64,000 nucleotides of DNA from Leidyana gryllorum EB-2025a (GCA_048772705.1 JBLWGC010000140.1:124001-188000); one strand, 5' to 3'; shown: positions 42,476-62,197, counted from the first letter of the stretch. A program made the numbers and translations. Notes: a model not told the origin generated them from the sequence alone.

Positions 42476-44546
42476 ATGAAGTTTGGAATTATAGTAGTGG
42501 GCATCCTACTTGATGTGGCGGTTGGTCGAGTGGGCCGCAAAGAGGTCCACAGAACCCTTCCAGGTGCCACACCCCTGATATTCGCACCCGACTTACCTCT
42601 TTTATCTGGGCTGAAAGTGAAAGATGCTTCGTCCACCTTTTGGCACACCTATCAAGACATAGATATTCTACTCTTCCGGTAATCAGCGCCTGTTTCTTGT
42701 GTCAGATCACTTTGCGAATCGCTGTGGACAGACGAGTTCCAATTAGCGTGGCAGTGCCGCAAGAAGAGCTGCGTGCCGCCGGCGTGGATGGTAATGGAGT
42801 CGCCGTCGCAAATGAAATCCACGCTGTGCTGCCTTCTCAGCTCCCCGACCTCTGCAATTGAGAGTGGAGTTGGCGCTCGCCCCTCACGACGAAGATCTGG
42901 ATGAAACGCCGGTGATTCTAATTGAGCGAAAACGCTTTGGCGGTGCTCTGCATATCAGACACGGTAATCAATCGGCAGAGTCCCTCACAATTGTCCGTTA
43001 TTAGACTCTTCGAACTTTTGTGACTGGCTACATGCCCCGGACCCACGAACTACGGGTGTCACCATTGGAACTTCGTTGACACTGCAGCCGAGGAATAGCA
43101 AAACCGCCAACAAGCTGTCTAGTTGGCGGGGATCGGGAACAATCAGCGACGTGAGCACGCGATGGCAGCACACCGTGTCTCCTTCACACTGAAACACATG
43201 TCTTTCAGGATTTCGTAATGTACATTGGATTCGCGGGGGTGAAGAAAGAGGCCCGTCGAGTGGATTTTACCATTTCAGCTCACCTGGAACCAGTCACAGG
43301 TATGAAGGTTCCACCCGCCATAATGAATGAATTACAATTTAACACACGTCAGATCCTGGCTACCAACCGGCGTGTGCTGCATTCCAAAAGTTCGCCCAAC
43401 CTCCATCAGTGACTCATGCATTGAAGACAACGGCTGTACCGGGGCTGGGAGTGTTGGCTAAGGAATTTATTGTCCGGAAATGGACAGATCTCCCGAGTTC
43501 AGAAGACTTGGTACTTGAACCCTACCGTGATCGACTGGGACGGTACAGTGTGGATGTCAAGTTGGATGGAAGTAATGTATTGGCTTTGGGACTGGACATG
43601 CCGGGTCTGAGGCATGGGAGGAGCAGAGGCTCTGCAGCTCCGTATCCTATGTTATTGATATCTGGTCCACGTCCGGGTGAGGTTGATGTTCTGATTGGAA
43701 GTTACCATGCACAATCGGTTTGGGAACTCCAGCGGTATCATCAGTTCGCTAACACGAGCGTGGGGGCCTACGAGCCAACAAGCTGGGCAGTCCCTTTGCG
43801 AGGAATATTGCAGCATATGGAACAGCATGCTTCCGCTCTGGCGCCGCCAGGAAGCACGCTGTTGGTGTTGGTCTTGCCACGGGAGCCACATCCGATCCCA
43901 ATACATATCACCACCCTCCTCTTATCGTCACAACATACTGTGGGCGCTGCCCAGAAGGCCGGTGTGCATCTTGCTGGAGGGATTCACCCGCCCATATTGG
44001 TCACCGACAAGGATCAGAACCTCAAGGGCCATTCACACTTGATATTCGGGGGTATGAGAGCATATACGACGTTCGTACGGTCAGTGCTCTTCGCTGCCCT
44101 GGGTCTTGCAGCGGCCCTTGGCATAGCTAGAGCTTTCTGGATCCTTATGTCAGAAGTCGCTGCCCGTCATACCGGTAAGTCCACAAGGAAACATTCTGCG
44201 GCTCTCCACACCACGTGACCCTGCAGAAGGCCGGATAGCCAACTTGTCAAACTGTTTCGGAGCCGCCAGCAACACTGGAAACCGCGTGCTGGAGCGAAAG
44301 GCTCGATCTGTTGAAATCTCCTCGGTTCGGCCTCCACCCGCCTCCACAGGCTGGGATGAGTCCCAAGAGCGCATCCCGCTCTGCGCACCCCACAGCGAAC
44401 CTAATTCGAGCTCAGTGGTCGAAAGTCAAACCACACCACGCCACACCCACAACCATGGCCACACAGCCGATCACGATCACAGAACAAGCCATGATCATGC
44501 TGGTGACAGCCATGACTTTGACGCATTTGAGATCTCAAGTAACTGA
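42476..44546 (+). CDS. Hypothetical secreted / single-pass membrane protein, multi-exon
   Basis: Signal-like MKFGIIVVGILLDVAVG, TM segment VLFAALGLAAALGIARAFWIL and a His/Asp-rich tail. Confidence 0.6.
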
Positions 44547-44651
44547 AATTGTATCGATATATATATATATATAAGATCTGAATGCAGTATGTTGATACGT
44601 GAACGCACACAAATAAAAAGAAACACGATCATGTGGCGATGAATATAGAGA

Positions 44652-45482
44652 TCATTTAGTCACCGATCTCTGGAAGGACAATATGTCCGAAATCCCGCCA
44701 CTGGCTGTGGTATCCCTCGACGACCCTTTCTCGTCGCTCTCCAAACGCGCCGCCAAATCACGAAGCTCCTTCTGACCTGATCGTACTTGGGTCACCAAGT
44801 CAGATTGCTGACGACGCATCTCTGTCCTCCTCCTCATAGCCCGCTCTTTCTCGCGACTGATCTCCACGAAACAGTCTTGCTTGGATCTTGCGGTTTCGCG
44901 AATCTCAAGCTCGAGCGGCAATTCAAAGCTTTTGACGGGTCGGGGAGGTGGTCTCTCCTGAAAGTCACGCTTCCGCTTAGATGCCTCGGCCATCATCTTC
45001 AAGACATTAGGCGGAGGCGCGACCTTGTGGCGCGGCTTGGGGGCCGCGTTCGTCAATGCCCGATCGCCTGCTAGCTCACGAACATGATTCCCCTTTGGGG
45101 CCAAAAAGAATCCTGGGGCGACCACCTTTCCCTCCTCAAAAAGCTTGCGCACATTTATCTAGAAACGAACGAATGCCGAATCAGTGGTGCGGTGCCTCAC
45201 CTTTTTGATAAAGGGCGCGTATGCAACGGATATTTCGCTGTAGCTGTTGAATCCGATCATCCAACCGGATGGTATGTATCCTCGCTCCTCCGCAAATTCG
45301 TAGATTCGAACGACTTGCTCGAATAGAATGGTCTCCTCAGGGCCAACAGGTGCGTAGAGCCCTTCGATCAAAACAGCCGACTTGAGTCGGCGGCGGTATG
45401 GTGCTGACAATAGTGCCAACTTTGGGGCATTGCAGCGTTCCGCCAGCTGGACCAGGAGCTTGCTGAATGCAAATCTCACCAT
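44652..45482 (-). CDS. Hypothetical protein with basic coiled-coil tail (5' end unresolved)
   Basis: ORFs 45159-45482 and 44652-45152 are in frame and joined by a gtgagg...ttctag intron. Confidence 0.55.
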
Positions 45483-45852
45483 CGGGGCAACCTTGAAGCT
45501 TGGATGTCCTCTTACCTAATACGACGTTGTGTTGCTCGCAATATGCCCGAATAATTCCCGTAAATACGACCACCACACGTCATAGCACACGTGTGTGTCA
45601 GCATTATCCTCAACTACCCAAACCCACAGAGCTGGATTCCACTACGGATACCGGACGGCGGGCACCTCTTGAGTGACGCTTGCGGACCCAATAACAAGTC
45701 GCGAAGGGCGACCAGTGCATAACATGGGTGTGCAGATAGAATAGTTACAAGAAATAGTAGCGATGCAAGTGGTTTAGGGGATTGTATGGGCAGTAGGGAA
45801 GCATAGCATGCGCGTATGGTTACCATCATTCAGATCAAGAGTGACCTGCGCC

Positions 45853-46656
45853 CTAAACTACTGTGCGCTGCACGTCATCCGGATTTGTCCGAACCACTGC
45901 TGGATGCTCCACTCCATAAATTCTGGGGCGAAGGGCTCGTGGGCCCACGCCGTCGGCATCTTCAATCATGTGGTATGCATTCCCAGTCGTCGACTGCCAG
46001 TACTTTCCGTCACGTTTTGTGATCGTGTAGACGGCAGAAGAGCCCAATTGCAAGTCATTTTCATCGTGAAGCGAAAAGTAATGAGACCACCGGTCGCAGC
46101 CAGGCTGATAGGGAATGACTTCGTGTACCCGCACCCAACGGGTGAAGCGCTCTTGATTTCCCCCAGCTTTTCCGTTGGCTGGCATTTTGACTGCTTGGCA
46201 CACGGCCTTGTACGTTGACCCCATCTGGATCGCATTCTGTGGAACGAGGTCTACTTTCCCTTTTGCAAATGTATTAGTCATCTCCTGAAGAAGGTAAGTT
46301 GACAAGTTGGTCAAACAGCCAACCAAAGCATCTCTGCATTGAGGGGACATCTTGTGGACTTGGCTGGGATTCTCGAACCATCCGGGAAACAGGTGAATTG
46401 TGTGACGATCCTTTTGGTCCCTCCACGTCAAGTGATGTGACAGAAGCCTTTGTCCTATGTACTCCACCTCATTTCCAATGTCCATCAGTCGGGTCGGCCG
46501 AACAACTTCAGAGGCCACAATGGAATCGTGCAAACTCTCAGGGGTCAGTGACAGTAAAGAGAAGTTAGAAGATGATGCTACCAAGACGGTTTGGCAGAAT
46601 GGCTTTAGGTGGCTATCAGACCGGTTTCTTTGAACATTCTTGAGAAACTTGAACAT
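45853..46656 (-). CDS. Unknown tandem family, copy 1
   Basis: PFCQTVLVASS, ALVGCLTNLSTYLL, RWSHYFSL, SAVYTITKRDGKYWQS motifs shared with neighbours. Confidence 0.8.
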   Translation of the reverse strand: MFKFLKNVQRNRSDSHLKPFCQTVLVASSSNFSLLSLTPESLHDSIVASEVVRPTRLMDIGNEVEYIGQRLLSHHLTWRDQKDRHTIHLFPGWFENPSQVHKMSPQCRDALVGCLTNLSTYLLQEMTNTFAKGKVDLVPQNAIQMGSTYKAVCQAVKMPANGKAGGNQERFTRWVRVHEVIPYQPGCDRWSHYFSLHDENDLQLGSSAVYTITKRDGKYWQSTTGNAYHMIEDADGVGPRALRPRIYGVEHPAVVRTNPDDVQRTVV

Positions 46657-46780
46657 CACTGGTCGCTTGTGAGCCGAAAAATTCAGCTCGTACACAATAA
46701 TCTCACCACCTTATCAAGTGGGCTCCCTCCCTAATCTGCATTCCACAGCGGCCATCATCTATGCCGCGATACGATGGCCA

Positions 46781-46841
46781 GACACCGTGACTCACGGGGG
46801 TGTGGACACCGTGTCTCACGGGGGTATGGACACCGTGTCTC
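46781..46841. repeat. 24-bp tandem repeat x2.5 with internal palindrome
   Basis: GACACCGTG(A/T)CTCACGGGGGT(G/A)TG repeated; CCGTG..CACGG hairpin in each unit. Confidence 0.9.
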
Positions 46842-47081
46842 CTATATGCGAGTAACTACAAAAGATAGAAGTTTCGGACGCACACAGACAGCGTTTGCGG
46901 GCGTATATCAATGCAGAAAGGGGAACAGTCAGCGACTTGGAGTAATTCGAGCGGAAAGCAACGACCTTGAACTTCGCACACACCAAAAATGTTTCCTAAG
47001 CCCGACTGGATATTGATCACATGGCCTGGTTTGTTTTCGAGTGATTATTGACCACAGCCTGACGTCACTCATACCACCCGC

Positions 47082-47861
47082 TTACATTAGTGTGCAACAT
47101 CCGCCCACTGAACATAGTCGTGCAGCTTGTGCTTCCATTGATATATCTTCGGGCTGTGTGTCTACAAGACTCCCCGTCTGTGATTCCACGTTCTCACATG
47201 ACTTTGTGGCTTTCTTCTCACCGACCTTCTCCTGACTTTGTCGGTACTGCCCGTCGACCTTTGAGATCTTGTAGACAGAAGATAATTTGATTTTCCGGGT
47301 GCGGTTACGAGTCACTACGAATTGATACGACCACGAATCGGCATCGGGCTGATATTTAGTAACTTGTCTCAGAGCCACAGTGTACGTTGTTGGAAGACGC
47401 CGGTCGTCGCCGCTCGCACGATCAGTACATACGGCTCTGAATCTTGAGCCGAATCGCATCCCATCGTAAGGCACAAGCTCTATTTCGAAAGCTTTGGACC
47501 GCGGCTCAATTGTTCGCAGCAAGAAGCCGGCCATATTGCTTAAAGCATTATCCAGCGCGTCTCTCTCGTGATCTGAGAGGGCGTTGCCAGCCTCACGTTT
47601 GAAACACGCGGTTCTAAGTTTCACACACCTGCCCAGATGAGAGGTATACCAAGTAATCTTCTTGTTGCCGGTGAGTCTGTCACCGTGGAATGTGACTAGA
47701 CCTTCATTGCTCAACAAGTGACTTTGTAGGGGAACCAAGATGTCGTTCTGCACTGTCGTGGCCGATTGCAGGGGCAAAGATGCCAGAAGGAACGTATGGC
47801 CTAAGATGCCCACACCCATAGTGGGCTGACTGTGTGGTGACAGCTTTATACAACCGACCAT
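47082..47861 (-). CDS. Unknown tandem family, copy 2
   Basis: MVGCIK..LGHTFLLASLPLQSA, ALDNALSNMAGFLL, SWSYQF, SSVYKISKVDGQYRQS. Confidence 0.85.
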   Translation of the reverse strand: MVGCIKLSPHSQPTMGVGILGHTFLLASLPLQSATTVQNDILVPLQSHLLSNEGLVTFHGDRLTGNKKITWYTSHLGRCVKLRTACFKREAGNALSDHERDALDNALSNMAGFLLRTIEPRSKAFEIELVPYDGMRFGSRFRAVCTDRASGDDRRLPTTYTVALRQVTKYQPDADSWSYQFVVTRNRTRKIKLSSVYKISKVDGQYRQSQEKVGEKKATKSCENVESQTGSLVDTQPEDISMEAQAARLCSVGGCCTLM

Positions 47862-47969
47862 TAATCTGAAAGGGTAAAATTTTGATGGGCTGGAGTGTGG
47901 CCGACACCACGTATGTCACCACAATCAACTACCAATCTCCGTCGATGCAGTAGCGTATCCGACTATCAT

Positions 47970-48011
47970 TCAACGATCGTCATCACTCCTCAACGATCGT
48001 CATCACTCCTC
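47970..48011. repeat. 20-bp perfect tandem duplication
   Basis: TCAACGATCGTCATCACTCC x2. Confidence 0.9.
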
Positions 48012-48925
48012 TTTGATCGGAAAGGAGCGAAACCCCGGCCGGGACTACTTGCGCGCAAACCTCGTCAGGGGCCTGCCGAGCGAGACGCAAGCGCACACGA
48101 TCACACAGAATAACACGCGTGTAGAATGTATCCGCTCTCATCGTTCGACCGACGTGCCGCCACACCGGTGCTTTGTTGATTGCATTAGCATTGCCCAGAC
48201 GAAGACGCGATGTACCGGAACGATAAAATTTGACCGTCAGATTTTTGTGTTCCAGACCCACCAAGTCACCTCTTTAGTATTTCTGATCCATTGTCTGGAT
48301 GGTGAGGTTACAGGACTCTCTCAACATGACATTGTTGATATCGGATTGGCGAAGAGCAATAGTGCAATGAATGCTGTCGTCATCATAGCTTTGATCGGGC
48401 GACTGCCGACGGATGTGGACGATAAAGCCGGGTTCGTTGGGGGCCGCCCTCTAAATGGTACTTGCGGAGGTATCGGTGGGATCGGATCCATCCACACACT
48501 GGGTACGAGCTCGGCATTCGCGACACCTCCCGCGCTTTTGGATGGAATCAGTGTCTTGAGAGTTCTTACAGTATCTTCTAGACAAAAACTCATCAGCTCT
48601 GTCCGGTGATTGTGTCTTTGGGGCAACCCTTCGTGTGCCGTGCTATAACAATGGAGTTGTGGGCGACCGAGGCCCAACCCATTTCAGACTTCATCCCACA
48701 CAGGTCCTCGAGCAGACGGCGGGTTTGGGGGGTGACAGTCCTCCGGTGAGGAAAAGTATGAGTCTGCGGGTCGTTTGCGACGAGTAAACAGTCGTGAAGG
48801 AGGCAGAAGGGGGTGCCAATTGAGCTGTCTAATTGGCTCGTGAGATCTTTCGAGCCGGCTGGTTTCTCTTCGCTACAGCTGAGGTCGGCGCTTACTGGCG
48901 CGGACCCCCGGTGCCAATATATCAT
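47983..48925 (-). pseudogene. Degenerate, frameshifted family-like copy
   Basis: Fragments in different frames: LLHDCLLVANDPQT (resembles LCHTFLLASLPQS) and LMSFCLEDTVRTL (resembles CLDNL). Confidence 0.4.
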
Positions 48926-49381
48926 TCAACGTGCGGCCAACCGATACTTCAAGGACTCGGGTCACAGCGAGAGGTTTGAGGTCGACGGGGCGCGAGGTCG
49001 AGAAGGAGTCTTGTCGTTCTCTCCCGAAGCTATCCGCCCGCGGGGCCGACAATGACATGGCCGAAATTGCCTATAACCGAGGCCGTTCGCGTGCGCACAC
49101 TCACAAGAACACGATTACTGACTGGGGGAGAGAAACCTGAACCGGCCCAAAGATGTTACGATTGATGTTATTGTCCCGTCAAGAGAGTCCCGCGTGCCCC
49201 TCTCAGCCTGATGTGTCTACCAGCCAAAGGACACTGCGATATGCGCCTTCAAAGAGTTAAGTTCATGCAAAAAGCACTGCGGCACGCACACACACACATA
49301 TACATACATCGATTTTGTGGATCATTGAGTCATTGAAACGCTTCATTCCAAACAGAGTATCGCTACGGTTCTCGCACCTTT

Positions 49382-50089
49382 ATTTATTGGACGAGTTGTC
49401 TACAGTTTGTGTGTAGCCTCCTTGCGACCACTCGAGATAGTAGACGATACTATGGTCCCCTTTGAATCGGTTCGCCGAAGTTTGTAGGCCGAGCTGTCTG
49501 GATTCTTTTGATACGGCCCGTACTCAGTAATCTTCGGTGTGTACGTTTAATATGCCGACGTCAGCGGCGGGAAACCGGTCAACTCGCAGACAGAAGTCTC
49601 CACCATCCGTTGACTGGAAGAAATTCGCTTTCCCGGGATGGATTCGCAGATAAACGGGCGCATCAGAGCTGAATGCTCGGATGAGAAGTGTTGCCATGTT
49701 GGTTAGACAGCTCTCCATAGCAATTCGGAATTTGTGGTCTGTTAGATACTCAAGAGTCTTGCAGAAAGTCGAGATTAACCGTCACCACCGTTGTGGCGTT
49801 TGGGGAATGCCACGCCACCAGCTTCCCGAGGAGCGCATTGCCTTTGCACACATTTTTCGTCGTCTCTACTCCATCCTCCCTCCAAGGGCACTTCGAGCGC
49901 AGTTGCCCTCGACGGCGAACGAGGCGCCAGCCCATCGCGTTTGGTGGCTCCCGATGATTCGGGGTCGGTTCCTGCGGTCGTAGACAGAGCCAAGCTTTGA
50001 GGCAATGATGCCAAGAGCAATGTGTGGCACAAAGGACCGGTGGCCCAACCCTGCGGAGTTGGATGAATCTGCTTCACACACTGAACCGT
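49382..50089 (-). pseudogene. Unknown tandem family, pseudogene copy
   Basis: ACG-VQCVKQ (start lost), LCHTLLLASLPQSLAL, two frameshifts, AMESCLTNMATLL, an internal TGA, then SIVYYLEWSQGGYTQT. Confidence 0.8.
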
Positions 50090-50405
50090 TGAGTGTCGCA
50101 CTTGAAGTACTCAATCAGCCAGGATCGAATGCTTAGTTCGGTCCAGAATGGAAATTTCGAGTGCCGTTGTCGCAACAAGCCACCTATCTGAAAGAAATAC
50201 ACCACAAAGATGTGCCATTGGTGAATTGAGTGCCACCGGCACGGAGACGCGAACTTCACAAACACGCACACTTCCAGATAGGACTTTAGATGTTCTGTTG
50301 ATAAAGTGACGTCACCCAATGTAGAAAGCCAAAGTTTTTCGATGTTGTGGTCATCACCTTCGTCCTCTTTGATTGACCAGTGAACGGCAGTCTTCCGGTA
50401 GACTC

Positions 50406-51119
50406 TTACATTCGCCGATCCTCTCCTATCCGACCCTGCTTGCACTTCTCATCGTCGCGTGCGACCAGATACGTGGGGGATGTGATCGGTTCCTCTCCCG
50501 GTGTGCAGAGTCTAAAGTAGTAACTCCAGTCGTCTTTGTTCATTTGATAGAGCTCCCTCTCGTGAATTTCCAGGGTGTGAATGGACTCCTCCCGTTCACT
50601 GGAGGTGCGGCCCAAGATGCATACGACCTTTAACGTGGAATCGAACCGGCTCGCTGATCGAAGGAAGTCACCATCTTGATGGACAATCTCTATCCGTCGG
50701 ACATTATCAACCCCCAACTGTCGCAGAACAAAGTGTGCAGCGTTTGTCAAACAGTTCTGCATAGCAACACCCAGGCTCGCGTCTTCGCGATCCTTTGCTG
50801 ACAAAAAGTCCAGTTTCATGGAAACATCCGGCTTGAAGCCCTTCAACCTCCAACGAAATGACGCTGTCTTATTGAGATCTGCCTCGACAATAGGGACTGC
50901 CGTTTCGTATGTTGCTGTGTTCAGCGTAATATCAGTCACTTCAATCGTCGTCTGGCTCATGCTCGAGTCCTTTGGCTGTGCTGAGATATCGTGGAGGCTG
51001 TCCGCTGACGTCGAGAGCGCTGAGCCTTGAGGAAGCGATGCTAGGAGAAATATGTGGGATCTTCGCACTGGTTGCCCAACAGGCAGACTGTGGCCAACCT
51101 TCTTGACACAGCTCACCAT
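50406..51119 (-). CDS. Unknown tandem family, intact copy
   Basis: MVSCVKK..SHIFLLASLPQGSAL, AMQNCLTNAAHFVL, DWSYYFRL, SPTYLV. Confidence 0.85.
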   Translation of the reverse strand: MVSCVKKVGHSLPVGQPVRRSHIFLLASLPQGSALSTSADSLHDISAQPKDSSMSQTTIEVTDITLNTATYETAVPIVEADLNKTASFRWRLKGFKPDVSMKLDFLSAKDREDASLGVAMQNCLTNAAHFVLRQLGVDNVRRIEIVHQDGDFLRSASRFDSTLKVVCILGRTSSEREESIHTLEIHERELYQMNKDDWSYYFRLCTPGEEPITSPTYLVARDDEKCKQGRIGEDRRM

Positions 51120-51597
51120 CAACAGAATCAACGACCCGCTTTGCACGACTTTTTTCGCCAACCAGAAGTGTTGTTGATCCTAAAAGGTCTCATTGCAACG
51201 CCTCCCAAACTCTGATAATTTCAGTACCAACACTGGCTCCTTGTGAGCGTTAACACACACGGAAACACACACGAATGAGCACAAAATGTTCTACTCAGTA
51301 CAATAATCAGGAGATCGGCTCACAAGACACACTGACGATGTGATGTGGGTCAGCCAGCATCAGTGTGCACTGTGAAGGACTGACAGCGGCAAAAGTGCGC
51401 AATACTCAGGCGTCGCAAAGCTGACATGTCTATCACACTGTGCCGCCGATGGCGGCTCGTTTCACTTATGCGCGGATGTCGCAGCTACTTCTCGGCCACG
51501 CACACACAGATACACACACAGATTTTAGCGGAAGCGATAAATGGAATCACTGAAATGAATGACAGAAAAGGATGTGATTGGAGATTAAATTCACAAT

Positions 51598-52310
51598 TCA
51601 GTATGTCGGAACGGTCTTCCTGACAGGGAAGCGGACAATGCGAGAAGGCTGCCCAGTTCGCATTTCTCTGTAGACATCATCGACCTTTGTAATGAGATAC
51701 CCGGCCGAATCGACTTTCAAGGACTCCTCCGTTTTGGTGAGAAAACGGAAGCGATATCCCCAAGTACCTGTTGGTACCGTCTGTCGGACCTGTGCTCCGT
51801 GAACTTCTTGCCTCTCTGTCGAACCCCTGTAGGTGCACACGACGCTAAAATCTTGGTCAAGAAATCTTTCGGCCCCCGGGACCTGACTCTCGGGGAGGAG
51901 GTGTATTTCGTCAGGCACCGGAAGGTCTCGACCTGTGAATTCCCGAATCAGAAACTCTACCAAGTTGTCCAGACAGTTGGCTGTCACCGCTGTCATCTCT
52001 GCCTTGTCAGGTGCTGTCAATGCCGCATGTCCTCTTAAATTGCCAGTTTCGAGGGTAACACTCAAGCCCGAGGTGTCATGTTTCCACACCATTGACATGT
52101 CCAGGAGGCGTTCCCCACCGCAGGTGACCTCTCAGGACACCGCATACCTCACTTAGACACCAGATATTGGCAAAGTGAAATTTGGGCTCATGGCCGGTCG
52201 CTGGTGCCTTCGCAGTTCTCAGAGCTCTATGGAGTACCTGCTGTATCCTGACAGCAGGAAGGGGCCGCAATACTCTCTGCCATTGTAACATAACGTATCT
52301 ACGACACCAT
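51598..52310 (-). pseudogene. Unknown tandem family, 5'-disrupted copy (closest to the 52763-53533 copy)
   Basis: The 3' 166 codons are intact (ANCLDNLVEFL, TWGYRFRF, YLITKVDDVY). Upstream are MVS-stop, a frameshift and an in-frame TGA. Confidence 0.7.
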
Positions 52311-52762
52311 GCCGATGGCTCGTCTCATTTGTTTTGTAGTCCCGGCCAGCCCTGGGAGGACTGGCCGAGTCCGATCTAGATCCGCTCCGGAAATTGGGTC
52401 CGGTAGGGGCCCGGGGGTGGATCGCGTTGCTACCATTGAGAATCGAGGGTTTTTTGGATGTTTGAGGGAGATCTAGTTGTGTTCGTAAAAAAAGGGGGTT
52501 TTTGAAGCACCTAGATCCTAAGCTTATCGTTGTTAGTTTCGTGTCTCCTGTGCCGGGCCGGCCGGCACGGAGACACAGACATCCGCCGGACCGGTCTTAT
52601 GCCGGGTGGCGACAATCCAACCGTTGTCACCGTTCTTATCACATTCTATGTCCGAATGTCGTGGTTAACTCGCGTTGGCCATACACATACACAATCAAAA
52701 GCCTGTGGCGGAAAGGTTACTAATTCATAGTATGGGGAGTGAGCAGAATCTAAATTTACAAT

Positions 52763-53533
52763 TTACTCCGCCCAGGGAACCGTCTTCTTATTGGGGAAGC
52801 GCCCAGTCCGAGTAATCCCTCCAGTGCGCGTTTCTGTGTAAACGCCATCGACCTTTTCGAGATGATAGTTGATTGAAGTGGTTTTGGAGTAGTTGTCCCC
52901 ATTAGTAAAACGGAAGCGGTACTCCCAGGCGTCTGGTGCGACCATCTGCCGAACCTGCGCTCTGCACACTTCTGGGATATTGCGCACTTCTCCTTCGAAT
53001 GAAGATGGTTTGTATTCGAATACGACTCTGAAGTTCTCGTCAAGAAGTCTATAGTCGTCCTCAACCTGCTTCTCCGGGACGAGGTGGATCTTCTCGAGGC
53101 CTTGGAGGCCCGTACCTTTCAATTGCCAAAAGATGAATTCTGCCAAATTGTCCAAGCAGTTCGCTTTCACCGCTCTCTGTTCTGCATTGCCAGGTGTTGT
53201 TAATGATGTATGTTCTCTCAATTTTTTGACATCGAGGCTCAACATCACGCCCGTGGCTTCATCCTTCCACACCATTGAGCCGTCCAGCAGACGTCCTCCG
53301 CTGGTGTTGACCGTCCGTGAAAATTCACCTAGGCAAGGATCTTGGCGCAGACTAATGACCATAGCCTCGGGTGGCGAAGCCGTCCGGTGCCTCTCAAAAT
53401 CGGATTGGACGCTCTCGGATGCGGCCGAAAAAGCCGAGCTTTGCGGCAAAGATGCCAGCAGGAATGTGTGGCATAATGTACGCGCCTCACTACTGGGCGC
53501 GCTTCCTCGAATCTTCTTGACACAGTTCACCAT
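52763..53533 (-). CDS. Unknown tandem family, intact copy
   Basis: MVNCVKK..LCHTFLLASLPQSSAF, ANCLDNLAEFIF, AWEYRFRF, SINYHLEKVDGVY. Confidence 0.85.
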   Translation of the reverse strand: MVNCVKKIRGSAPSSEARTLCHTFLLASLPQSSAFSAASESVQSDFERHRTASPPEAMVISLRQDPCLGEFSRTVNTSGGRLLDGSMVWKDEATGVMLSLDVKKLREHTSLTTPGNAEQRAVKANCLDNLAEFIFWQLKGTGLQGLEKIHLVPEKQVEDDYRLLDENFRVVFEYKPSSFEGEVRNIPEVCRAQVRQMVAPDAWEYRFRFTNGDNYSKTTSINYHLEKVDGVYTETRTGGITRTGRFPNKKTVPWAE

Positions 53534-54172
53534 CTCAAAACAACGACAAGCTTTCCAAAATCTTTTTAGCACGTCGGAAGTCTGGACATTAACTCATTAC
53601 AACGCCCTTCGAGCTGCCAGTGAGCTTGAAAAGCTCGTTTTGTCTCTCCATAGCGGGGAAGCTGTGATCAGATCGCAGAGGAGTAAAGAGTCTGGAATGC
53701 GCTCTCAGCAGGCTGTTAGAGAACCCGGAGCCCATCCATTCACGCCTCTGTACCGTCTAGTGAGCCTTCATTTCAATGAAACTTGAGTCCGGGGAAAAAA
53801 ACGTGTGTGATGGCATGTTTGCATCTCTGTGTCTCCGTGTGTTGGGGCTTGAAAACGGACCCAGATCTGGCTTCATTTGATTAGTATGAACGACAGGTGT
53901 TATTTCGTGGACTTGTTAGTGACCGACTATCTGATCGGCGAGAACTGTAACGTGAGTGTATTTCGTGATGATGGGAGATCATTTTGACAATTATTTAATT
54001 GGTTATTGTAATTGATTGAAAGTGCAACCGACCTGAACACTGTTCATTATGTCAGACAGAAATGTGAGCGAGCATTGCTTCCTCGACCTGAAGGCTTCAC
54101 GTGCAGCCGATGGCAGAACACCACTAGTGGCACCGTATAGCAGATAAATGGTCCGGGCCGCATTCTTGGAGT

Positions 54173-54841
54173 CTATGGTATCGCGGACATTCCGGAGCGA
54201 GCTACCCCTCTCAAGGGGCTCTCCTCTCTCAAGTCATTGTCATTGGGCTCTCGGAGGGCAAGTGAGTAAATTTTGGGAGTGTGTGGAGACGACCAGCTCC
54301 CACCGCTCTCTGAGCTCAACTTCCTCTCAGAACTCAGTATTGCTTTATAAACAACAGTGTGGGTTTCCGGGGCATCGGGGGTTCCCTTGTCGATACTGCA
54401 TCTCACTTGATGCTCATAGCAATTCTTGGTCCTCTTTTGGGGGGAGACATCTACTCTCGATACCGAGGAAGGGGAGTGTAGTCATGGCACCAAGAATTTG
54501 ATCAAATCGGTGAGGGGGTCATTGTGGCCGGGAGAGTGTTCCCGCCGGCCCTCACCCATTGTGTTCTGAGGCGACGACCCAGACGGCAAAAACACCTCGT
54601 CTGAGAGGGTGTCACAATCAATCCCAGGCTCATCATAATCCCAAGCATCTTGTCTCCTCCGCAGCTCCTACCAACTTTGGTGTAAAGGTCTGGGCGATTT
54701 TGGAACTTCAATTGCGTTATTTGGCGCCATCAATGCGGAGGAGGTGGGTGTCAGAGACGCCAGCGCACCAGCAGTGTGGCCTTAGGACCTCTAGTCGCAA
54801 CTTGACAAAGTTTGTGGGCACTTCTTCACACAACTCACCAT
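54173..54841 (-). pseudogene. Unknown tandem family, heavily decayed copy
   Basis: MVSCVKKCPQTLSSCD-stop followed by LASLTPTSSAL and broken frames. Confidence 0.65.
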
Positions 54842-55325
54842 GTAAAACGTGGACCGGTTCGAAGGAAAGAAAGTCTCGACTGCAATGATATCTGCACAGA
54901 AAGGGATCTTAATCAATTGTGACTTTGTATGGGTCGAAATCAGCGACGACGAGTTGATATCACAGTGTCAGCAAAGTCAAGATCGCAGTGAAGATGACTA
55001 TGTCAATGAAGGCTCAGACCCAAATTTAGAGTGGGGAACGTTTCGCATATGATCGGATCGGTGCTGCAAACCTGAATGGGTGACTCACTCCCCCCCAGCC
55101 AGGCGAGCACACACTCCGATAAGATGCGGACATAGCGAGAAATGAAAAAAAAATTGAGCGCTCACATAACCATCCATCTCAGTCAGCACGTCAGCTCTTT
55201 CCGGACGAGATTCACAAAACACTCGAGCAGTCTTTTGGCTCAACATTGGCACCAAAAGGATGCTACCGATCCGACTGATCAGTCCCGGGTTGAGTCATGA
55301 CTCTGGCACTGTCTGATTTGTTCAA

Positions 55326-56021
55326 CTACTCATTCCAGCGGACGTCACTTAGTGACATCTCATCAGAAACTGTAGTACTCATCCAAGATGCCCCCCCCTC
55401 CTCATCCTCCACGGAGTGAGGGTTCACATAAATGGGGGATGAACACCTTTCACGCCCGTCCAAATCATGGAGTGTGAAGTACCAACTCCAAGTATTCCGA
55501 CCATCCAGGCGATTGTAGGTGATGTCGTGAACCACCACCCTCTGAACCACTTTTTTCGCCAGTCTTTTGTCTCCTTTGTTCCACACATTGCTCACGACTT
55601 GATACCCCATATCAATTCGCATCTCGTTCTCAGCGAACAGCTCAATTGTCAGCTTCGACGATTCGGGCTCGACCTGCTTCAAAAGGAATGCTGCCAAGTC
55701 ATCTAGGCAACGGTGCATGGCTTTTGCAAAGTTGTTATCCTGCAGGTACTTCGATTCTCGTATCGAGGTACCATCAAACGATAGTTTCTTCCCGAACCCA
55801 CGCACTTTCCACCAGATCACGTCCTGCTTGTTACTCTTACAGCACAGCTTGGGCCTGCTCGGCGTGAATCGGGTCACGTCGAACGGCTCCAATACACTGT
55901 TGCCCTCAATTGCCGCCAACGATTGCGGAGACAGTGATGCCAACAGAAATGCAGACCAGGTCGGCGGAGTGACGTCACAAGTCGACAACGGTCGAAGCTG
56001 GCGTGTTACACAGCTGACCAT
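55326..56021 (-). CDS. Unknown tandem family, intact copy
   Basis: MVSCVTR..WSAFLLASLSPQSLAA, AMHRCLDDLAAFLL, TWSWYFTL, SSPIYV. Confidence 0.85.
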   Translation of the reverse strand: MVSCVTRQLRPLSTCDVTPPTWSAFLLASLSPQSLAAIEGNSVLEPFDVTRFTPSRPKLCCKSNKQDVIWWKVRGFGKKLSFDGTSIRESKYLQDNNFAKAMHRCLDDLAAFLLKQVEPESSKLTIELFAENEMRIDMGYQVVSNVWNKGDKRLAKKVVQRVVVHDITYNRLDGRNTWSWYFTLHDLDGRERCSSPIYVNPHSVEDEEGGASWMSTTVSDEMSLSDVRWNE

Positions 56022-56413
56022 ACCAAAAATTTAGATTGGGCCATCGTCCACCATTCTGTGCCACCGACGAATCAGACTCTGGGTGGAACACGCAACACTA
56101 CACTCCGTGTCGGCCAATGATCACACCGACAGCGTATATCAGTACCAAAGGGCACGCTACACTTTTACACACACAATGAGTGCCATCCGGCATCGTGTGC
56201 GGCAAACGCGCGGAGACACAGACATCCAGACACACTTTGTCAATTTGTGCTCCCAGAGAATTAACTAGTTGGGGAAAAGAGTCAGTCAGTCACCGTCAAC
56301 CTAAATCATATTCCGACGAAAAGTAGTCACATCCGAACAGTGCCAAAAAGTTACCATCCAGAATGCATGAATTATGACCGGACGGATAATCGCGAGCACA
56401 CGCAGGATGTAGA

Positions 56414-58015
56414 TCATTTCACGATTAAAACTGTTTCACGCGATGTGGAATCTGTTGATGCAAGAGCTAGGCGGGCAAGGCAATAGTTGCCTGTGACACC
56501 GCCGGGCAGCTGCAACTTGTCCGCCAGAGAACCTGTTCCCTCGCTATGGGAACCAACAGCGAAATCTCGATGAAAATCCGAGAGTGCGGTCTCCCAGCTA
56601 TAGTGGAGAAACGAATGCACAACCCGGCCATTCACAAGCGTCCATGAAACTCCCCCGTTCGGAGAGTCCATCAGCGTCCATCCAGATTGCACGTCGTTGT
56701 ATGCCCAGAGCGGCGTCCCACCAGGCCGTCCTGTCCTGACGACCTCCAATAAGCTGTCATCTATCATTGTCTTTCGCACTTGGACACTTTCTCGGTTACA
56801 TAACCAGCGCGTATCAACCTTCTTCCCATACTCTCCTATGAGCTTCCAGAGACTGCTCTGATCTGCCCAATTCCACCACGGCTGCTTTGTCAGATCAGAG
56901 CAGTCAACAGAATCCTTGTCAGAGGGCTTAGTGGCCTGGAACGGAATCTCAGTCGTAGACGCAGCCTCAGCCTCAGACTCAGTCACAGGGGTTTCTGAAG
57001 TGGGGAGCTGTGTCCGCGCAGTGTCCAATAAACTTGAATTTGTTGGAAACACGCCCTGATATGCTGGACGCAGTGTCACGGCCGTCGTCCAGCTGTCGCA
57101 GAGGTCTCCGTGGCAATCGAGAGTCATTTTGTGAGCGATCCGTTCCTGGAGCGCTTTGAGGGCCGCATCAGCGCTGTGCCCGTACTTGATGGTCCCGATG
57201 GGTCCGCTTGCAGCGACTTCGAGCCACATGGAGCCTCTCAGCCTTTCAAATAGAACGAATTGGGCAAAGTCTTGTGCCCGGGGGTCGTCGAGTCGCGTTA
57301 TGTCGACCATGAAGCGGCGACCGTTGCCCGAAACCAATATGGGCGAATGCTGGTTTGTTGGGAGTTGATAGATCAACTCGAAGGGGTTGGGGGCGGGTTG
57401 ATCTTTTGTGGCTTCCAGCACAAATCCCGCGGCTTGGCAGAGCCGATTGATCATTTTGGGGTCTGCGGTGCCGCTGAGGAGACCCGATTTGATGAAGGGG
57501 TAATTGTTGGCGGGAGCATTAAAATGCAAATTGACACTACGGCCGGTAATGTCGTCGACGACGACTCCGTCGTACCGATCAGTCCCCTCGGCGCGGCGGA
57601 ATGAGTGAAAGGTGAGATTCTTGACTCCCGGTATGGCCGGAGAGCTGCCGAAGTGAACGAAGACTTTTCGACCAGAACGGTTTAGCCGGATGTGCTCTTG
57701 GGCGGTGCTCACCAACCCCCTTTCCCTCGTGAGGAATAGTGCCCTCAATTTTGCCCAGCGAGAAGTGCTGACTATTCGCATCCCGGGTGAGAAAGATGCC
57801 AGCAAGGCAAGGGCGGTTGGATCGTTGCTGAATTTGTCCAGCAGGTCGTTCGATCGTGAGTAGAAGACTCCCGTCTCCACAGTAGGATCGGGGGCGGTGT
57901 CAATGGGCAACCAATCGTGTGAAGACAAAAGGCTCTGGACAAGAAGGCCAGAGGTCTGTCGATAGCGCGCCGCATTACACACTTCCCGACTTGTGTCTTT
58001 CAGCGCAGGTCCCAT
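56414..58015 (-). CDS. Unknown ~530-aa protein, long-form paralog A
   Basis: Shares DDITGR, RLCQAAGFVL, FAQFVLFER, AASGPIG and NDVQSGW with the adjacent ORF. Confidence 0.8.
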   Translation of the reverse strand: MGPALKDTSREVCNAARYRQTSGLLVQSLLSSHDWLPIDTAPDPTVETGVFYSRSNDLLDKFSNDPTALALLASFSPGMRIVSTSRWAKLRALFLTRERGLVSTAQEHIRLNRSGRKVFVHFGSSPAIPGVKNLTFHSFRRAEGTDRYDGVVVDDITGRSVNLHFNAPANNYPFIKSGLLSGTADPKMINRLCQAAGFVLEATKDQPAPNPFELIYQLPTNQHSPILVSGNGRRFMVDITRLDDPRAQDFAQFVLFERLRGSMWLEVAASGPIGTIKYGHSADAALKALQERIAHKMTLDCHGDLCDSWTTAVTLRPAYQGVFPTNSSLLDTARTQLPTSETPVTESEAEAASTTEIPFQATKPSDKDSVDCSDLTKQPWWNWADQSSLWKLIGEYGKKVDTRWLCNRESVQVRKTMIDDSLLEVVRTGRPGGTPLWAYNDVQSGWTLMDSPNGGVSWTLVNGRVVHSFLHYSWETALSDFHRDFAVGSHSEGTGSLADKLQLPGGVTGNYCLARLALASTDSTSRETVLIVK

Positions 58016-58150
58016 GGGACGTTATTGAAAGAGCTGGTGGTTGGCCGAGAAGATGTAACTACTTGTTGGGAAAAAAGAAAGTAATTGAATGTTTGGGCCC
58101 CTAATTGGCCGACGGAACGATAATAGCTAAAAAATCCCGACAACCCACTC

Positions 58151-59653
58151 TCATGTCCATATCTCATCGATGTCTGCGTCTCGGTCGGCGTCAGGGCCGA
58201 GAGGGGGATTCTCGAAAAGTGCACGGTAACTTTCTCTGAAGTCGAGTCCGGGCCGACCGCTTCCTGCCCAGGGGCCGCGTGGTATCTGAAGTAGACAGGT
58301 TTTGTCTCTGAGGACGGTGATCAAATTGTCATCAACACTTGTTGGGTACAAAACCCAGCCATTTTGGACATCGTCGTGCGCCGTTGCTTTGCCCAGCGAC
58401 TGGGTCCCTCGAAATTGCTTTACTTCAAGATACGCGTTGTGAGGTGGAAGGACGCGCATATCAAATTGGATGTTCTCCCAGGGCTGAGGTACATTCCTCA
58501 ATGCCAGTCGCAACATGTCTTGCTGTTGCTCCGCAGTGTACTTCACATGACCAATTTCGTTAATAATGGGAATCTCTTTGCTCCCTTTGGCTTGCCAGAG
58601 CGCAGGGAACACAGGTGCAGCCACATCCCACTCGGGACCCGGGAGTTTGTGCCGCAGTACCCTACACCACAATCGAGCCCTGGGCGGGAGGCTGGATACT
58701 GGCGTGTCATATCCCTCCGTGCACATTGCCCACAATGTCCGGCAGTGGTGAGTATCGAGCTCCGCCTGTCCGCCCGGCCGAATCAGTCCGACGGGGCCAC
58801 TGGCTGCTCGTTCAGTCCACACGTCCTGTCCTTGTGGGTTTTGCACTCGTTCGAACAGCACGTACTGGGCGAAATACTGGTTTGAATGATCAGTTATTGG
58901 TACCATTCTGTCAATGTCGATGAGATAAGTGGGGATCGGTGCATCGTTGACATAGACCGACACGGCTCCCCTCCTCGGGTGGGTAGGATCAGCACAGTAC
59001 CTAATTTTGAGCTTGTCGGTCGGCTTGAATTCCTTCCTCGTCGCGTAAAGGAAAAATGATCCCATTTGACAAATTCGTTCATTCATGTCCTTGTCAATAC
59101 TTCCCGGATAACTTCCAATGTCAATGTTTCGCAACACGTTACCCCTGTGAATCACACTTATGCGAACGATACGACCCGTCACGTCGTCCCGAAGACGAGT
59201 CCGATACGTTGGACACTTAAACTCGGGGTCAGTCGCCTCAGGATCGAGTGTCCATTGAATCCAGTGACACAATCTGAAAGTGCCGCTCGTTCCGGCAATG
59301 ATCCCGTCGTCGACTCCAATGACCTTCAGACCACCAGGACGCTTCTTCTGCAAACTCTCGTACTCTGCTTGCCGTTCTCCCAACAAGAAGCACAGCCGCA
59401 TCAGCCGAACCGGATTGATCGCGTACTCTCCCCAAGGAGAAAGTACCTTTCGCAGGGCTTCCTTAGCACGGGGCTGATACCGAACGGAGAAAGACTCCGG
59501 CTCATCCGGCGTTATTACATCCGGCTCGTCAACAATGTCTTCGGCGCTCTCCGAGGTTTCGGTTGGTATGTTCAACGCACAATAACCGCCCACTATCCAC
59601 CACCGACCAGCAATTCCGTTCTCCGATTTCAATGGACACCGTAGTACAGCCAT
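58151..59653 (-). CDS. Unknown ~500-aa protein, long-form paralog B
   Basis: DDVTGR, RICQMGSFFL, FAQYVLFER, AASGPVG, DDVQNGW; first ATG at 59653. Confidence 0.8.
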   Translation of the reverse strand: MAVLRCPLKSENGIAGRWWIVGGYCALNIPTETSESAEDIVDEPDVITPDEPESFSVRYQPRAKEALRKVLSPWGEYAINPVRLMRLCFLLGERQAEYESLQKKRPGGLKVIGVDDGIIAGTSGTFRLCHWIQWTLDPEATDPEFKCPTYRTRLRDDVTGRIVRISVIHRGNVLRNIDIGSYPGSIDKDMNERICQMGSFFLYATRKEFKPTDKLKIRYCADPTHPRRGAVSVYVNDAPIPTYLIDIDRMVPITDHSNQYFAQYVLFERVQNPQGQDVWTERAASGPVGLIRPGGQAELDTHHCRTLWAMCTEGYDTPVSSLPPRARLWCRVLRHKLPGPEWDVAAPVFPALWQAKGSKEIPIINEIGHVKYTAEQQQDMLRLALRNVPQPWENIQFDMRVLPPHNAYLEVKQFRGTQSLGKATAHDDVQNGWVLYPTSVDDNLITVLRDKTCLLQIPRGPWAGSGRPGLDFRESYRALFENPPLGPDADRDADIDEIWT

Positions 59654-59839
59654 AGCCAGCCCCAAAATTACCTGCAGACCAAAAAGAATATCGCTGTTCA
59701 AAATGCCTCAGCCGAAACCACACTAAGGCAACAACAATTTGACCTCTGAGCCAATCTGAACCCAAAACACACCCCGTTCTCAGACACTGAAGCAATACTG
59801 GCCATGGCCAGAAAACAGTGATCTTCCCAGTCCAACGGT

Positions 59840-59841
<2 letters not shown>

Positions 59842-59875
<34 letters not shown>

Positions 59876-59911
59876 CACATACACACATACACATACACAT
59901 ATACACACACA
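59842..59911. repeat. Compound (CA)n/(TA)n microsatellite
   Basis: Directly visible. Confidence 0.95.
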
Positions 59912-59969
59912 AATACAGATCAACCCTCACGCCGTGTCTACAGATTGCTTCGAAATTCGACTACAAGTA

Positions 59970-60385
59970 GCACCGTTTCCTCCTCTTTCGGGCAGTCAGC
60001 GCGTAATCTGAACCCCGTTGTCCAAAGGAGGGTGTACCCTTCCTGTTTCGTGGGGTAACGAGCGCTTTGGTTGCTGACATGCCTACCAGACTGCCCCGCT
60101 CGGACCCGCCGTGGGCCCGCTGCTTCTATCAGCGACTGATGGTGGTAGCTAGCCTCGGTTCCGTGTAGGGGAATCACGCCTCAGACAACGAGTCCCTGTC
60201 CCCCCGTAACTCCCATCCTGGGCCCGACTTGCCCCTTGCGACGGATGGGGTAGAGTTCTTCCTTCGGGTGAAAGGAGTGCCGGGCTTGATCCAGCAGTTT
60301 GCCGCCATATCAATTACTGCTTATGATTATGGACACTACGCTATAGTCCAGATGAGACGGCTGCCCGACCCACCGGAAACGTTGG
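59970..60385. ncRNA. Candidate structured ncRNA (identity and strand unresolved)
   Basis: The ends pair (CGTTTCC/GGAAACG, TCGGGCAG/CTGCCCGA), with many nested stems and no long ORF. Confidence 0.3.
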
Positions 60386-61139
60386 CCTCCGACGACTGCT
60401 GTCTTCCATTTGTGAGATTGTAGTTCATCACACTCCACCTACCCTCCTCGGAGGAGACCCGTTACACACACGTGTGCTACGCTTTTAATCACCTCATGTG
60501 AAACGAAGAACACTACTAGTGGACACACTCTCTCCCTCAGATCACCTTCCGCACTACAGCGAACGTTTAGCGAACCCGACAACGCCGAGAGCCTTGGTGG
60601 GCATAGCCATTCATGAAAAGCCCAGAAACTTATATGGAAGATGCCGAAGCGTCTCGCGCGAACTCGAGAATTTCACGACTTGCAGTGCAAACTGCAACAT
60701 TGGGGCTCACATCAGAATCAGGAAAAATGATTGGAGTTAAAAAAGTTTTGGGAGGGGTTTAGATTGTTTGTGACGCCGTGTTGTATCGGCGTGACCTCCT
60801 CGGCTTGCTCCGACATGTCTGGCTGTTTAGAGGAGTGCCGTTGGAGGCGTAGGCTCTGCGACCGGGTTATCACTGGTATGACGAGTTAGTAGAGAAGTTG
60901 CAGTAGATTAGTTGTAGCTGTTGTACACGGGTAGTCACTGATTAGAGTCAAGCATCTCTCTCGCTCTGTCTGTTCTTTCTATTCTGTCTGGGCTTCTGTA
61001 GTTGTGTGCGGCATCGTCCCAATGGGCGATGCAGCTGGGTTGTGTGTGTGTGCTATTACAGATCAAAATATAATGGGGTTTTTAGTGACTTCGTGTTTGC
61101 TATAAGAGCTCTGGACGAACAATGCATTCAATTCGGCAG

Positions 61140-61218
61140 TCAGATAGGAGCGAAAGACTATTTATTGTTAGCATCCACGGTCCGTGTCGCGACAAAGGTT
61201 GCAGGGAGTTATCATCAG
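61140..61218 (-). ncRNA. Box C/D snoRNA type A copy 1 (snR60/SNORD80-like)
   Basis: TGATGA...TAGTCTTTCGCTCCTAT-CTGA; guide complementary to the conserved LSU rRNA sequence AUAGGGGCGAAAGACUA; CGGCA/TGCCG terminal stem. Confidence 0.88.
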
Positions 61219-61294
61219 TTGCCGGTTCACTCATGCGACAGTTTATGATCAAGAGAAGGTCTGGTTGCGAGCACGGGAGGGATGCACTATAATA

Positions 61295-61368
61295 TCAGAC
61301 AGCCAAGGAAACAGTTGTAGTCGTCATTGGTAATCGGCGACTCTAGTCAATTGCTGCTGCGTCATCAT
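61295..61368 (-). ncRNA. Box C/D snoRNA type B copy 1 (double guide, SNORD52/53-like)
   Basis: ATGATGA..GACTAGAGTCG-CCGA(D')..GTTTCCTTGGCTGT-CTGA; guides match LSU rRNA UGACUCUAGU and ACAGCCAAGGGAAC. Confidence 0.88.
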
Positions 61369-61435
61369 GAGCATTCTGGTGATCAGGCAAGTGAGGAGCG
61401 CGTGCACGAGTGGTAAATGAGTTCACTAATAGTAA

Positions 61436-61514
61436 TCAGATAGGAGCGAAAGACTATTTATTGTTAGCGTCCACGGTCCGTGTCGCGACAAAGGTTGCAG
61501 GGATTTATCATCAT
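61436..61514 (-). ncRNA. Box C/D snoRNA type A copy 2
   Basis: Near-identical to copy 1; boxes intact. Confidence 0.88.
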
Positions 61515-61568
61515 GAGAACCTCATACACACATACATGGGGAGGAAGAAGATGGATAGACAAGTTCTA

Positions 61569-61643
61569 TCAGACAGCCAAGGAAACAGTTGTAGTCGTCA
61601 TTGGTGATCGGCGACTCTAGTCAATTTGCTGCTGCGTCATCAT
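61569..61643 (-). ncRNA. Box C/D snoRNA type B copy 2
   Basis: Near-identical to copy 1; boxes intact. Confidence 0.88.
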
Positions 61644-61744
61644 GAACAGTGCAGGAAAATGCGAAGAATTATCAAAGTGAAGATTGCTGTGATGATAAAG
61701 TCATGAATAGCGCACTTGAACAATGGGCGTTTCAACTGATATAA

Positions 61745-61823
61745 TCAGATAGGAGCGAAAGACTATTTATTGTTAGCGTCCACGGTCCGTGTCGCGACAA
61801 AGGTTGCAGGGAGTTATCATCAT
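61745..61823 (-). ncRNA. Box C/D snoRNA type A copy 3
   Basis: Near-identical to copy 1; boxes intact. Confidence 0.88.
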
Positions 61824-61907
61824 GGGAACTCAAACCACACACACACGCGCGCGCGCACACATACACACACAGCGAGGAAGACGAAGAAGATGAATCGACA
61901 AGTTCTA

Positions 61908-61982
61908 TCAGACAGCCAAGGAAACAGTTGTAGTCGTCATTGATAATCGGCGACTCTAGTCAATTTGCTGCTGCGTCATCAT
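61908..61982 (-). ncRNA. Box C/D snoRNA type B copy 3
   Basis: Near-identical to copy 1; boxes intact. Confidence 0.88.
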
Positions 61983-62197
61983 GAGTGATTGAAGCTTGAG
62001 GGCCAAGACGAGAACGAAAGACATTCAAGGAGATGGAAGAATAAATAGATGTGAGATAACCTCTGGATTTTTGGAACCGTTCAAATTCGCGTCTTCTGTT
62101 TTGTCTTTTCGCGGGGGCACAATAGCCTCTCCGCCCCCCTACAACATCTGCTCCAAACAAAAAGTACCCAGTATACCAACAACCCCCCTATCCCCCG

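Follow-up and report, generated by a model that had tools for sequence, protein, structure and literature searches.

Short N-terminal motifs that outlast diverging, clustered and lineage-specific protein bodies are known from the oomycete RxLR proteins and Crinklers (LxLFLAK motif) and from the proteins that carry the Plasmodium PEXEL or the Toxoplasma TEXEL. The motifs of these proteins follow a canonical signal peptide or sit in a folded header, and they are common to many families per genome. A different type of N-terminal signal is a Cys in the first five residues with hydrophobic and basic flanks, which is the pattern of myristate-free N-terminal S-acylation. An early Cys with hydrophobic and Lys/Arg flanks at the start of a disordered tail is also shared by proteins of the GAP-43 type and by the ISP family and GAP45 of the apicomplexan pellicle, of which GAP45 and ISP1-3 are myristoylated. 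Here, we describe an island of ~14 kb in the gregarine Leidyana gryllorum EB-2025a (GCA_048772705.1; an assembly of 15.5 Mb in 237 contigs with ~52% G+C) that encodes a family of small proteins with a two-part N-terminal leader. The window, which is the whole stretch of 64,000 nucleotides that was analyzed, is G000:C140:124001-188000 (JBLWGC010000140.1), and positions in the island are counted along it.

The island lies in the middle of a 346-kb contig (G000:C140), away from either end, and consists of a row of minus-strand open reading frames (ORFs) with a period of ~1.2 kb. It is a genuine tandem array of paralogues, shaped by birth-and-death evolution and specific to a gregarine lineage. 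Five intact paralogues of 231-267 amino acids (aa) are found on the minus strand between 45.8 and 56.0 kb. The two blocks of their leader are the best-kept parts of the protein. Block 1, MVxC(V/I)K(K/L), forms the extreme N-terminus, and block 2, HxFLLASLPQ, occupies residues 22-31. Mean pairwise identity among the five full-length copies is 0.47 over residues 1-7 and 0.57 over residues 22-34, with values of 0.12 for residues 8-21 between them, 0.16 for the linker that follows and 0.23 for the folded domain. The leader blocks are also the only repeats at the DNA level that distant copies have in common. Nevertheless, the codons of F-L-L-A-S-L-P differ synonymously among the copies (e.g., CTT/CTC/CTG/TTG, TCT/TCA/TCG and CCC/CCT/CCG), and because the motif codons vary at synonymous positions, the constraint on the leader acts at the protein level. 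The block identities and the synonymous codon changes together bear out the notion that the leader is a distinct module, selected for its amino acids. The loci of the island, all on the minus strand, are as follows.

45853..46656, minus strand: copy 1, intact, 267 aa; divergent leader (MFKFLKN..., TVLVASSS) without Cys4.
47082..47861, minus strand: copy 2, intact, 259 aa; leader MVGCIKL...HTFLLASLPL; C-terminus ...GGCCTLM (CaaX-type box).
47983..48925, minus strand: possible old decayed copy; weak matches, collinear with the family and at the spacing of the array, none of them significant (E>30).
49383..50110, minus strand: pseudogene A; leader readable as VQCVKQ...HTLLLASLPQS, ACG in place of ATG, body spread over three frames.
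50406..51119, minus strand: copy 3, intact, 237 aa; leader MVSCVKK...HIFLLASLPQG.
51598..52300, minus strand: copy 4; body ORF 51598-52098 open (166 aa), upstream leader broken.
52763..53533, minus strand: copy 5, intact, 256 aa; leader MVNCVKK...HTFLLASLPQS; the copy used for the structure model.
54671..54841 (about), minus strand: pseudogene B, a leader remnant; MVSCVKK, two stops, then ALASLTP.
55326..56021, minus strand: copy 6, intact, 231 aa; leader MVSCVTR...SAFLLASLSPQ.
56414..58015, minus strand: long form 1, 533 aa; paralogue of long form 2.
58151..59653, minus strand: long form 2, 500 aa from the ATG at 59653; N-terminus MAVLRCPLK...GRWWIVGGYCAL.

An earlier note, made from the window alone, had proposed about 11 loci with five intact copies of 230-270 aa. 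Both statements hold: the five copies are all present as open minus-strand ORFs (231-267 aa), and the total is reached with copy 4, the two pseudogenes, the possible remnant at 47983-48925 and the two long ORFs. Homology among the copies is firm, as leave-one-out hidden Markov models (HMMs) recover all of them with E-values of 1e-18 to 6e-42. All three motifs of that note, in the leader, the central helix and the C-terminal block, align, with qualifications for two of them: copy 1 lacks Cys4 and its second block is degenerate (TVLVASSS), and the Cys of the central helix is missing in copy 2. Cys4 is present in six of the seven readable leaders, and MV(S/N/G/Q)C(V/I)(K/T)(K/R/L/Q) describes the start of copies 2, 3, 5 and 6 and of both pseudogenes, copy 1 being the exception. 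The observation of a tandem family with a conserved leader is thus confirmed: the protein family is new, and its genomic type is a familiar one.

The array combines maintenance with decay. Synonymous sites are saturated in every pair except copies 4 and 5, for which the synonymous divergence (dS) is 0.89 and the ratio of nonsynonymous to synonymous divergence (dN/dS) is 0.44. That the family is fast-evolving is therefore plausible and, given this saturation, strictly not demonstrated. Five ORFs of 231-267 codons have stayed open despite saturated dS, and they have therefore long been maintained under purifying selection. At least three of the nine short loci are broken: the island contains at least two pseudogene remnants beside copy 4, which has an intact body (46-48% identical to that of copy 5) and a leader that reads MVS-stop, with the stop at the Cys codon, followed by a frameshift near 52290 and then PFLLSG. 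The weak resemblances at 47983-48925 are a leader-like LLVANDPQ, a helix-like FCLEDTV..L and then AELVPS, and are not statistically significant.

Each intact gene is predicted to be a single exon. The copy coordinates count from the conserved ATG, longer ORF calls beginning at upstream GTG or TTG codons. Alignability starts exactly at this ATG, and the DNA upstream of the copies cannot be aligned. Because conservation begins at the ATG and the upstream DNA is unalignable, the N-terminus can be regarded as fixed, and a missing upstream coding exon is argued against. An intron directly after the start codon (ATG|GTGAG..., with the pyrimidine-rich FLLASLPQ region ending in AG) was considered and rejected, as splicing it out would cost 92 nt and disrupt the reading frame. 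The donor-like bases, which are not kept in copies 1, 2 and 6, and the synonymous variation of the motif codons also speak against this reading.

Both the family HMM and a leader-only HMM match this cluster alone in the 15.5-Mb genome. A Pfam scan of all eight ORFs (at the E<=1 level) found no domain; a match to MbnB was dismissed as chance, with 13 bits vs. a cut-off of 25. A word-index protein search with copy 5 returned no relatives, and a profile search of 1.84 billion representative proteins returned no genuine match, its lone hit, a bacterial repeat protein, being spurious in that it pairs with the variable linker seven times. Sequence profiles of the PDB gave nothing significant (the best was the SrrB sensor domain, E 0.049), a search of the ESM Atlas by features gave nothing usable, and the JGI metagenome contigs searched with copy 5 contain no relative. 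Eight exact protein sequences from this genome, one of them calnexin, were looked up in the public collection and none is there. The assembly thus lacks a public protein set, and a missing self-match is uninformative. Because the public sets searched include gregarine transcriptomes, the family is either confined to the lineage or diverged beyond recognition. The earlier view that the family has no known domain and is lineage-specific thus stands: no housekeeping or transposon domain was matched in any of these searches, and the family is restricted to one locus of the genome and without relatives in public protein sets.

An AlphaFold2 model of copy 5, built from six sequences, has a predicted template modeling score (pTM) of 0.66. 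The predicted local distance difference test (pLDDT) is mostly 75-90 for residues 70-245 and below 50, i.e., disordered, for residues 1-55. In this model, the protein consists of a disordered N-terminal tail of ~55 aa and a folded alpha+beta domain of ~180 aa. Along the chain, the model has four short strands, a pair of small helices, a 22-residue helix (residues 117-138) that carries the A-x3-C-L-(D/T)-N-L-x2-F motif, and a meander of seven or eight strands in which the W-x-Y-x-F and S-x2-Y-x-I-x-K-x-D-G-x-Y motifs sit. Together, these elements are modeled as an antiparallel sheet with strong curvature that packs around a single, long helix at its center.

In three independent structure searches, the StARkin/SRPBCC helix-grip lipid binders rank first. 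Foldseek with the model finds CoxG, Ups1, a bacterial START domain, Lam2 and Ara h 8 (E from 7e-3), and SRPBCC families make up eight of ten structure rows from the Atlas, with template modeling (TM) scores of 0.29-0.48. The best structural neighbors include Ups1 and PRELID. The predicted shape of the domain is closest to the StARkin/SRPBCC helix-grip, at a match below the level that proves a common fold. In the model, as in these domains, a curved antiparallel sheet of at least seven strands is wrapped around a long helix, and alignments with this superfamily (Ups1-PRELID, Aster/GRAMD1, Lam/Ysp2, Bet v 1/PR-10 and polyketide cyclase-like proteins) are collinear over 100-130 residues. However, the long helix of the family is central, whereas that of the helix-grip is C-terminal (beta-alpha-alpha-beta6-alpha) and closes a hydrophobic cavity, and the family has four additional N-terminal strands. 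Neither the Pfam scan of all copies (E<=1) nor the PDB profiles yielded a sequence-profile match to START, Bet_v_1, Polyketide_cyc, PRELI, AHSA1 or VASt, and lipid binding by the family is conjectured from the model.

Next to the short copies, and on the same strand, stand the two long forms, which are paralogous to each other (34% identity over the central 143 residues, E 7e-15). A third paralogue, an ORF of 581 aa at about 423.1-424.9 kb of another contig (G000:C230, minus strand), shares their FFL-x-ATR helix and VLFE...W-x-E-x-AASG block. Neither a word search with long form 2 nor the PDB sequence profiles revealed outside relatives of the long forms. An hhalign comparison of the long with the short forms gives no significant match (E 0.39 and 0.77), and the sole region that it pairs between them is the long helix with its C-x5-F-x-L pattern. 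The central domain of ~180 aa in the long form is modeled with lower confidence than the short form (pTM 0.63, pLDDT 62) as strands, a loop, a long helix, a five-strand meander with an aromatic-rich strand, and a C-terminal helix. By comparison of the models, the order of elements is alike in the long and short forms, and eight of the 50 best structural neighbors of the long form (6uue, 9n6e, 4r80, 8xua, 4pr7, 2wjr, 7ed2 and 6gie) are common to both. The long forms differ in bearing extra N- and C-terminal regions. Their N-termini contain a Cys and basic residues followed by an aromatic or short hydrophobic patch (MAVLRCPLK...WWIVGGYCAL; ...REVCNAARYRQTSGLLVQSLLSS; ...MWWSFIGSVQPWGLLF), an arrangement that appears to echo the architecture of the short-family leader. 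A common origin of the long and short forms has about an even chance of being correct.

The N-terminal tail is likely to send the protein either to a membrane or outside the cell. That it is a genome-wide targeting signal was rejected: two back-translated leader patterns match outside the cluster only at control frequency, and none of these matches elsewhere in the genome is followed by a similar tail. Leader-like N-termini are also lacking at G000:C140:307300-317299, in a 39-kb array that closes this contig and encodes unrelated proteins of 530-670 aa with coiled-coil-like C-termini. The idea that the family has its own trafficking signal is not supported, as such a signal would be private to one family of five genes, the leader being absent elsewhere in the genome. 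In this respect, the leader differs from the RxLR, Crinkler, PEXEL and TEXEL motifs, which serve many families, and the family has no match to RxLxE, RRL or LFLAK and apparently no canonical signal peptide. For PEXEL/TEXEL (RxLxE/Q/D or RRLxx, placed 15-30 residues behind a signal peptide), the alignment offers no conserved Arg/Leu column in that region, R-T-L-C-H occurring in copy 5 alone and RRSH in copy 3. A Crinkler header, which is ubiquitin-like and ends in LxLFLAK, is likewise absent: there is no Pfam match, the tail is predicted to be disordered, and FLLASLPQ stands at residue 24 vs. about residue 50 for LFLAK.

The reading that we prefer, tentatively and at less than even chances, is that the tail is an S-acylated membrane tether. 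The tail would then be a membrane-targeting module in which Cys4 is S-acylated, aided by the flanking hydrophobic and basic residues, as in myristate-free N-terminally palmitoylated proteins, and the FLLASL block would add a short hydrophobic insertion or docking element. Acting together, the two blocks might hold a small domain, perhaps a binder of lipid or of some other hydrophobic ligand, on the cytosolic side of a membrane, for example the pellicle. Judged by the sequence, the start of the protein has the N-terminal S-acylation pattern of the GAP-43 type, i.e., an early Cys with hydrophobic and basic flanks, and the part of the earlier proposal that saw Cys acylation next to basic residues is consistent with this candidate site. 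Copy 2 alone ends in a CaaX-type box (...GGCCTLM-stop, window 47082-47105, with an extra upstream Cys), and such a box is a cytosolic lipidation signal. Residue 2 is Val (Phe in copy 1), and because the Gly2 of the myristoyl plus palmitoyl motif is missing, dual acylation is excluded. The lack of Gly2 also sets the family apart from GAP45 and ISP1-3; no relation of sequence or fold connects it with the GAP-43 type, ISP or GAP45 proteins, and its acylation is putative.

Several points weigh against the acylated tether. With Val2, there would be no myristate to prime palmitoylation. Copy 1 has no Cys4 and copy 4 has lost the whole leader, yet the bodies of both stay open. The hydrophobic block falls within the range spanned by the bottom quarter of genuine signal peptides, and the residues after it are small (PQSSAFSA), as they are ahead of a signal-peptidase site. 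Tandem, diverging and lineage-specific families of Apicomplexa are usually secreted. The CaaX-type end, occurring in one copy only, could have arisen by chance. Finally, a look-up of public sequencing runs for a 10-kb stretch listed none that could show expression of the copies.

The signal-peptide alternative, possible and on balance rather unlikely, is that the leader is a recessed, weak signal peptide or processing motif, with FLLASL as the h-region and PQ(S/G)SA(L/F)S as a c-region that holds a signal-peptidase site. On this view, the mature domain would be a host-interaction factor, either secreted or exposed on the cell surface, and might scavenge lipid. The calnexin of this genome, which has a textbook signal peptide (MRLRLFLAGCLAAATVKA), provides a reference. 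Its best public match, at 53% identity (E 1e-142), is a EukProt transcript sequence that bears the label Gregarina sp., followed by one at 49% identity (E 1.6e-137), all remaining matches being at E 6.6e-94 or worse. This ranking supports a gregarine-like apicomplexan as the source of the genome. The calnexin gene lies at about 158.1-159.5 kb of G000:C36 (minus strand); its ORF ends at 466 aa vs. ~550-630 aa in homologues, and the membrane anchor is probably on a further exon. Hydropathy was compared as the 12-residue Kyte-Doolittle mean, with 110 calnexins (median 2.28) as the reference set. By this measure, 93-99% of soluble 40-aa segments are less hydrophobic than the leader block, which ranks in their top 1-7%, and the block reaches the 5th-26th percentile of calnexin signal peptides. 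In addition, the segment before the block has a net positive charge, and small residues follow the core in every copy (PQSSAFSA, PQGSALST, PLQSATT, SPQSLAAI), giving small uncharged residues at the putative -1/-3 positions. Secreted apicomplexan families typically show a tandem, birth-and-death and lineage-specific pattern like this one, and an internal Met15 in copy 2 would begin a near-canonical signal peptide.

Nevertheless, the h-region would be just 6-7 residues long and would begin at residue 23-24, and its 12-residue mean is 1.2-1.6 vs. 2.25 for the calnexin of this genome, an ambiguous value that falls in the lowest 5-21% of the signal peptides of the calnexin set. The mature domain is without a conserved cysteine pair, none being present in the copy alignment, the CaaX-type box at the end of copy 2 is a cytosolic signal, and a signal peptide would give no reason for MVxCVKK to be so strictly conserved. 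Secretion would thus be slightly less likely than a lipid anchor on the cytosolic face. The earlier suggestion of a secreted or surface effector is unsupported by a block that is short, recessed and weakly hydrophobic, by the missing cysteine pair and by the end of copy 2.

It is improbable that the tail is instead a soluble short linear motif of a cytosolic protein, for docking, degradation or protease processing, in which a partner recognizes Cys4 and FLLASLPQ. A disordered tail with two short conserved islands has the usual look of linear motifs, and a leader private to one family is what would be expected for a family-specific partner over a general sorting machine. However, PEXEL/TEXEL, dileucine signals and 14-3-3 sites were compared with the alignment by eye and none fits, and membrane-binding segments are the more typical setting for a Cys that is combined with basic residues and a hydrophobic block. 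A mitochondrial presequence that imports an Ups1/PRELID-like lipid-transfer domain is very unlikely. The first ~40 residues are basic, rich in Ser, Thr, Pro and Ala and almost devoid of acidic residues, and the best structural neighbors, Ups1 and PRELID, are lipid carriers of the mitochondrial intermembrane space. Against this, there is no amphipathic Arg-rich helix, Pro and Gly interrupting the segment, and no conserved Arg at -2, -3 or -10 of any common site. Moreover, Ups1/PRELID proteins are themselves without presequences, a tandem decaying array is unusual for organelle proteins, and the structural match is under threshold.

That the ORFs are non-functional, decaying remnants of a mobile element or an expired family is barely credible: the broken short loci, the lack of homologues elsewhere and the lack of a listed sequencing run for the 10-kb stretch would agree with it, whereas the five long-open ORFs, the dN/dS of 0.44 in the sole measurable pair, the confident fold obtained from only six sequences, the amino-acid conservation with synonymous change, and the absence from the island of long terminal repeats, of terminal inverted repeats and, in the Pfam scan, of transposon domains argue against it.

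The sole non-coding repeats of the island are (CA)n/(TA)n microsatellites, found between copies at 49283-49309 and 51497-51523; another lies just upstream of long form 2 at 59836-59918. A search of 44000-64000, including 61140-61982, against Rfam at gathering thresholds gave no match. Just downstream of copy 1, two adjacent minus-strand ORFs (44652-45482; 166 and 107 aa) lie outside the family and resemble the exons of a single ordinary gene whose product has a basic, coiled-coil-like tail.

Among the large branches of the Apicomplexa, the gregarines have been studied least, and the way in which their proteins are addressed to the pellicle or the host interface is almost uncharted. The reach of the leader is limited to one family of five genes in an organism that is uncultured, and if the tail is an ordinary weak signal peptide, the array would be one further lineage-specific secreted family of local interest only. 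A broader scenario, in which a new, lineage-specific sorting signal made of acylation and a hydrophobic block takes StARkin-like lipid binders to the parasite-host interface, with the neighbors of ~500 aa as an ancestral long form with a degenerate signal, is improbable. The tail is better kept than the folded domain and so presents a compact motif, with one block of 7 residues and one of 10, that is amenable to mutational tests. If the domain should prove to be a divergent lipid binder of the helix-grip type, the family would be relevant to the way in which lipids are handled by parasites that rely on those of their hosts.

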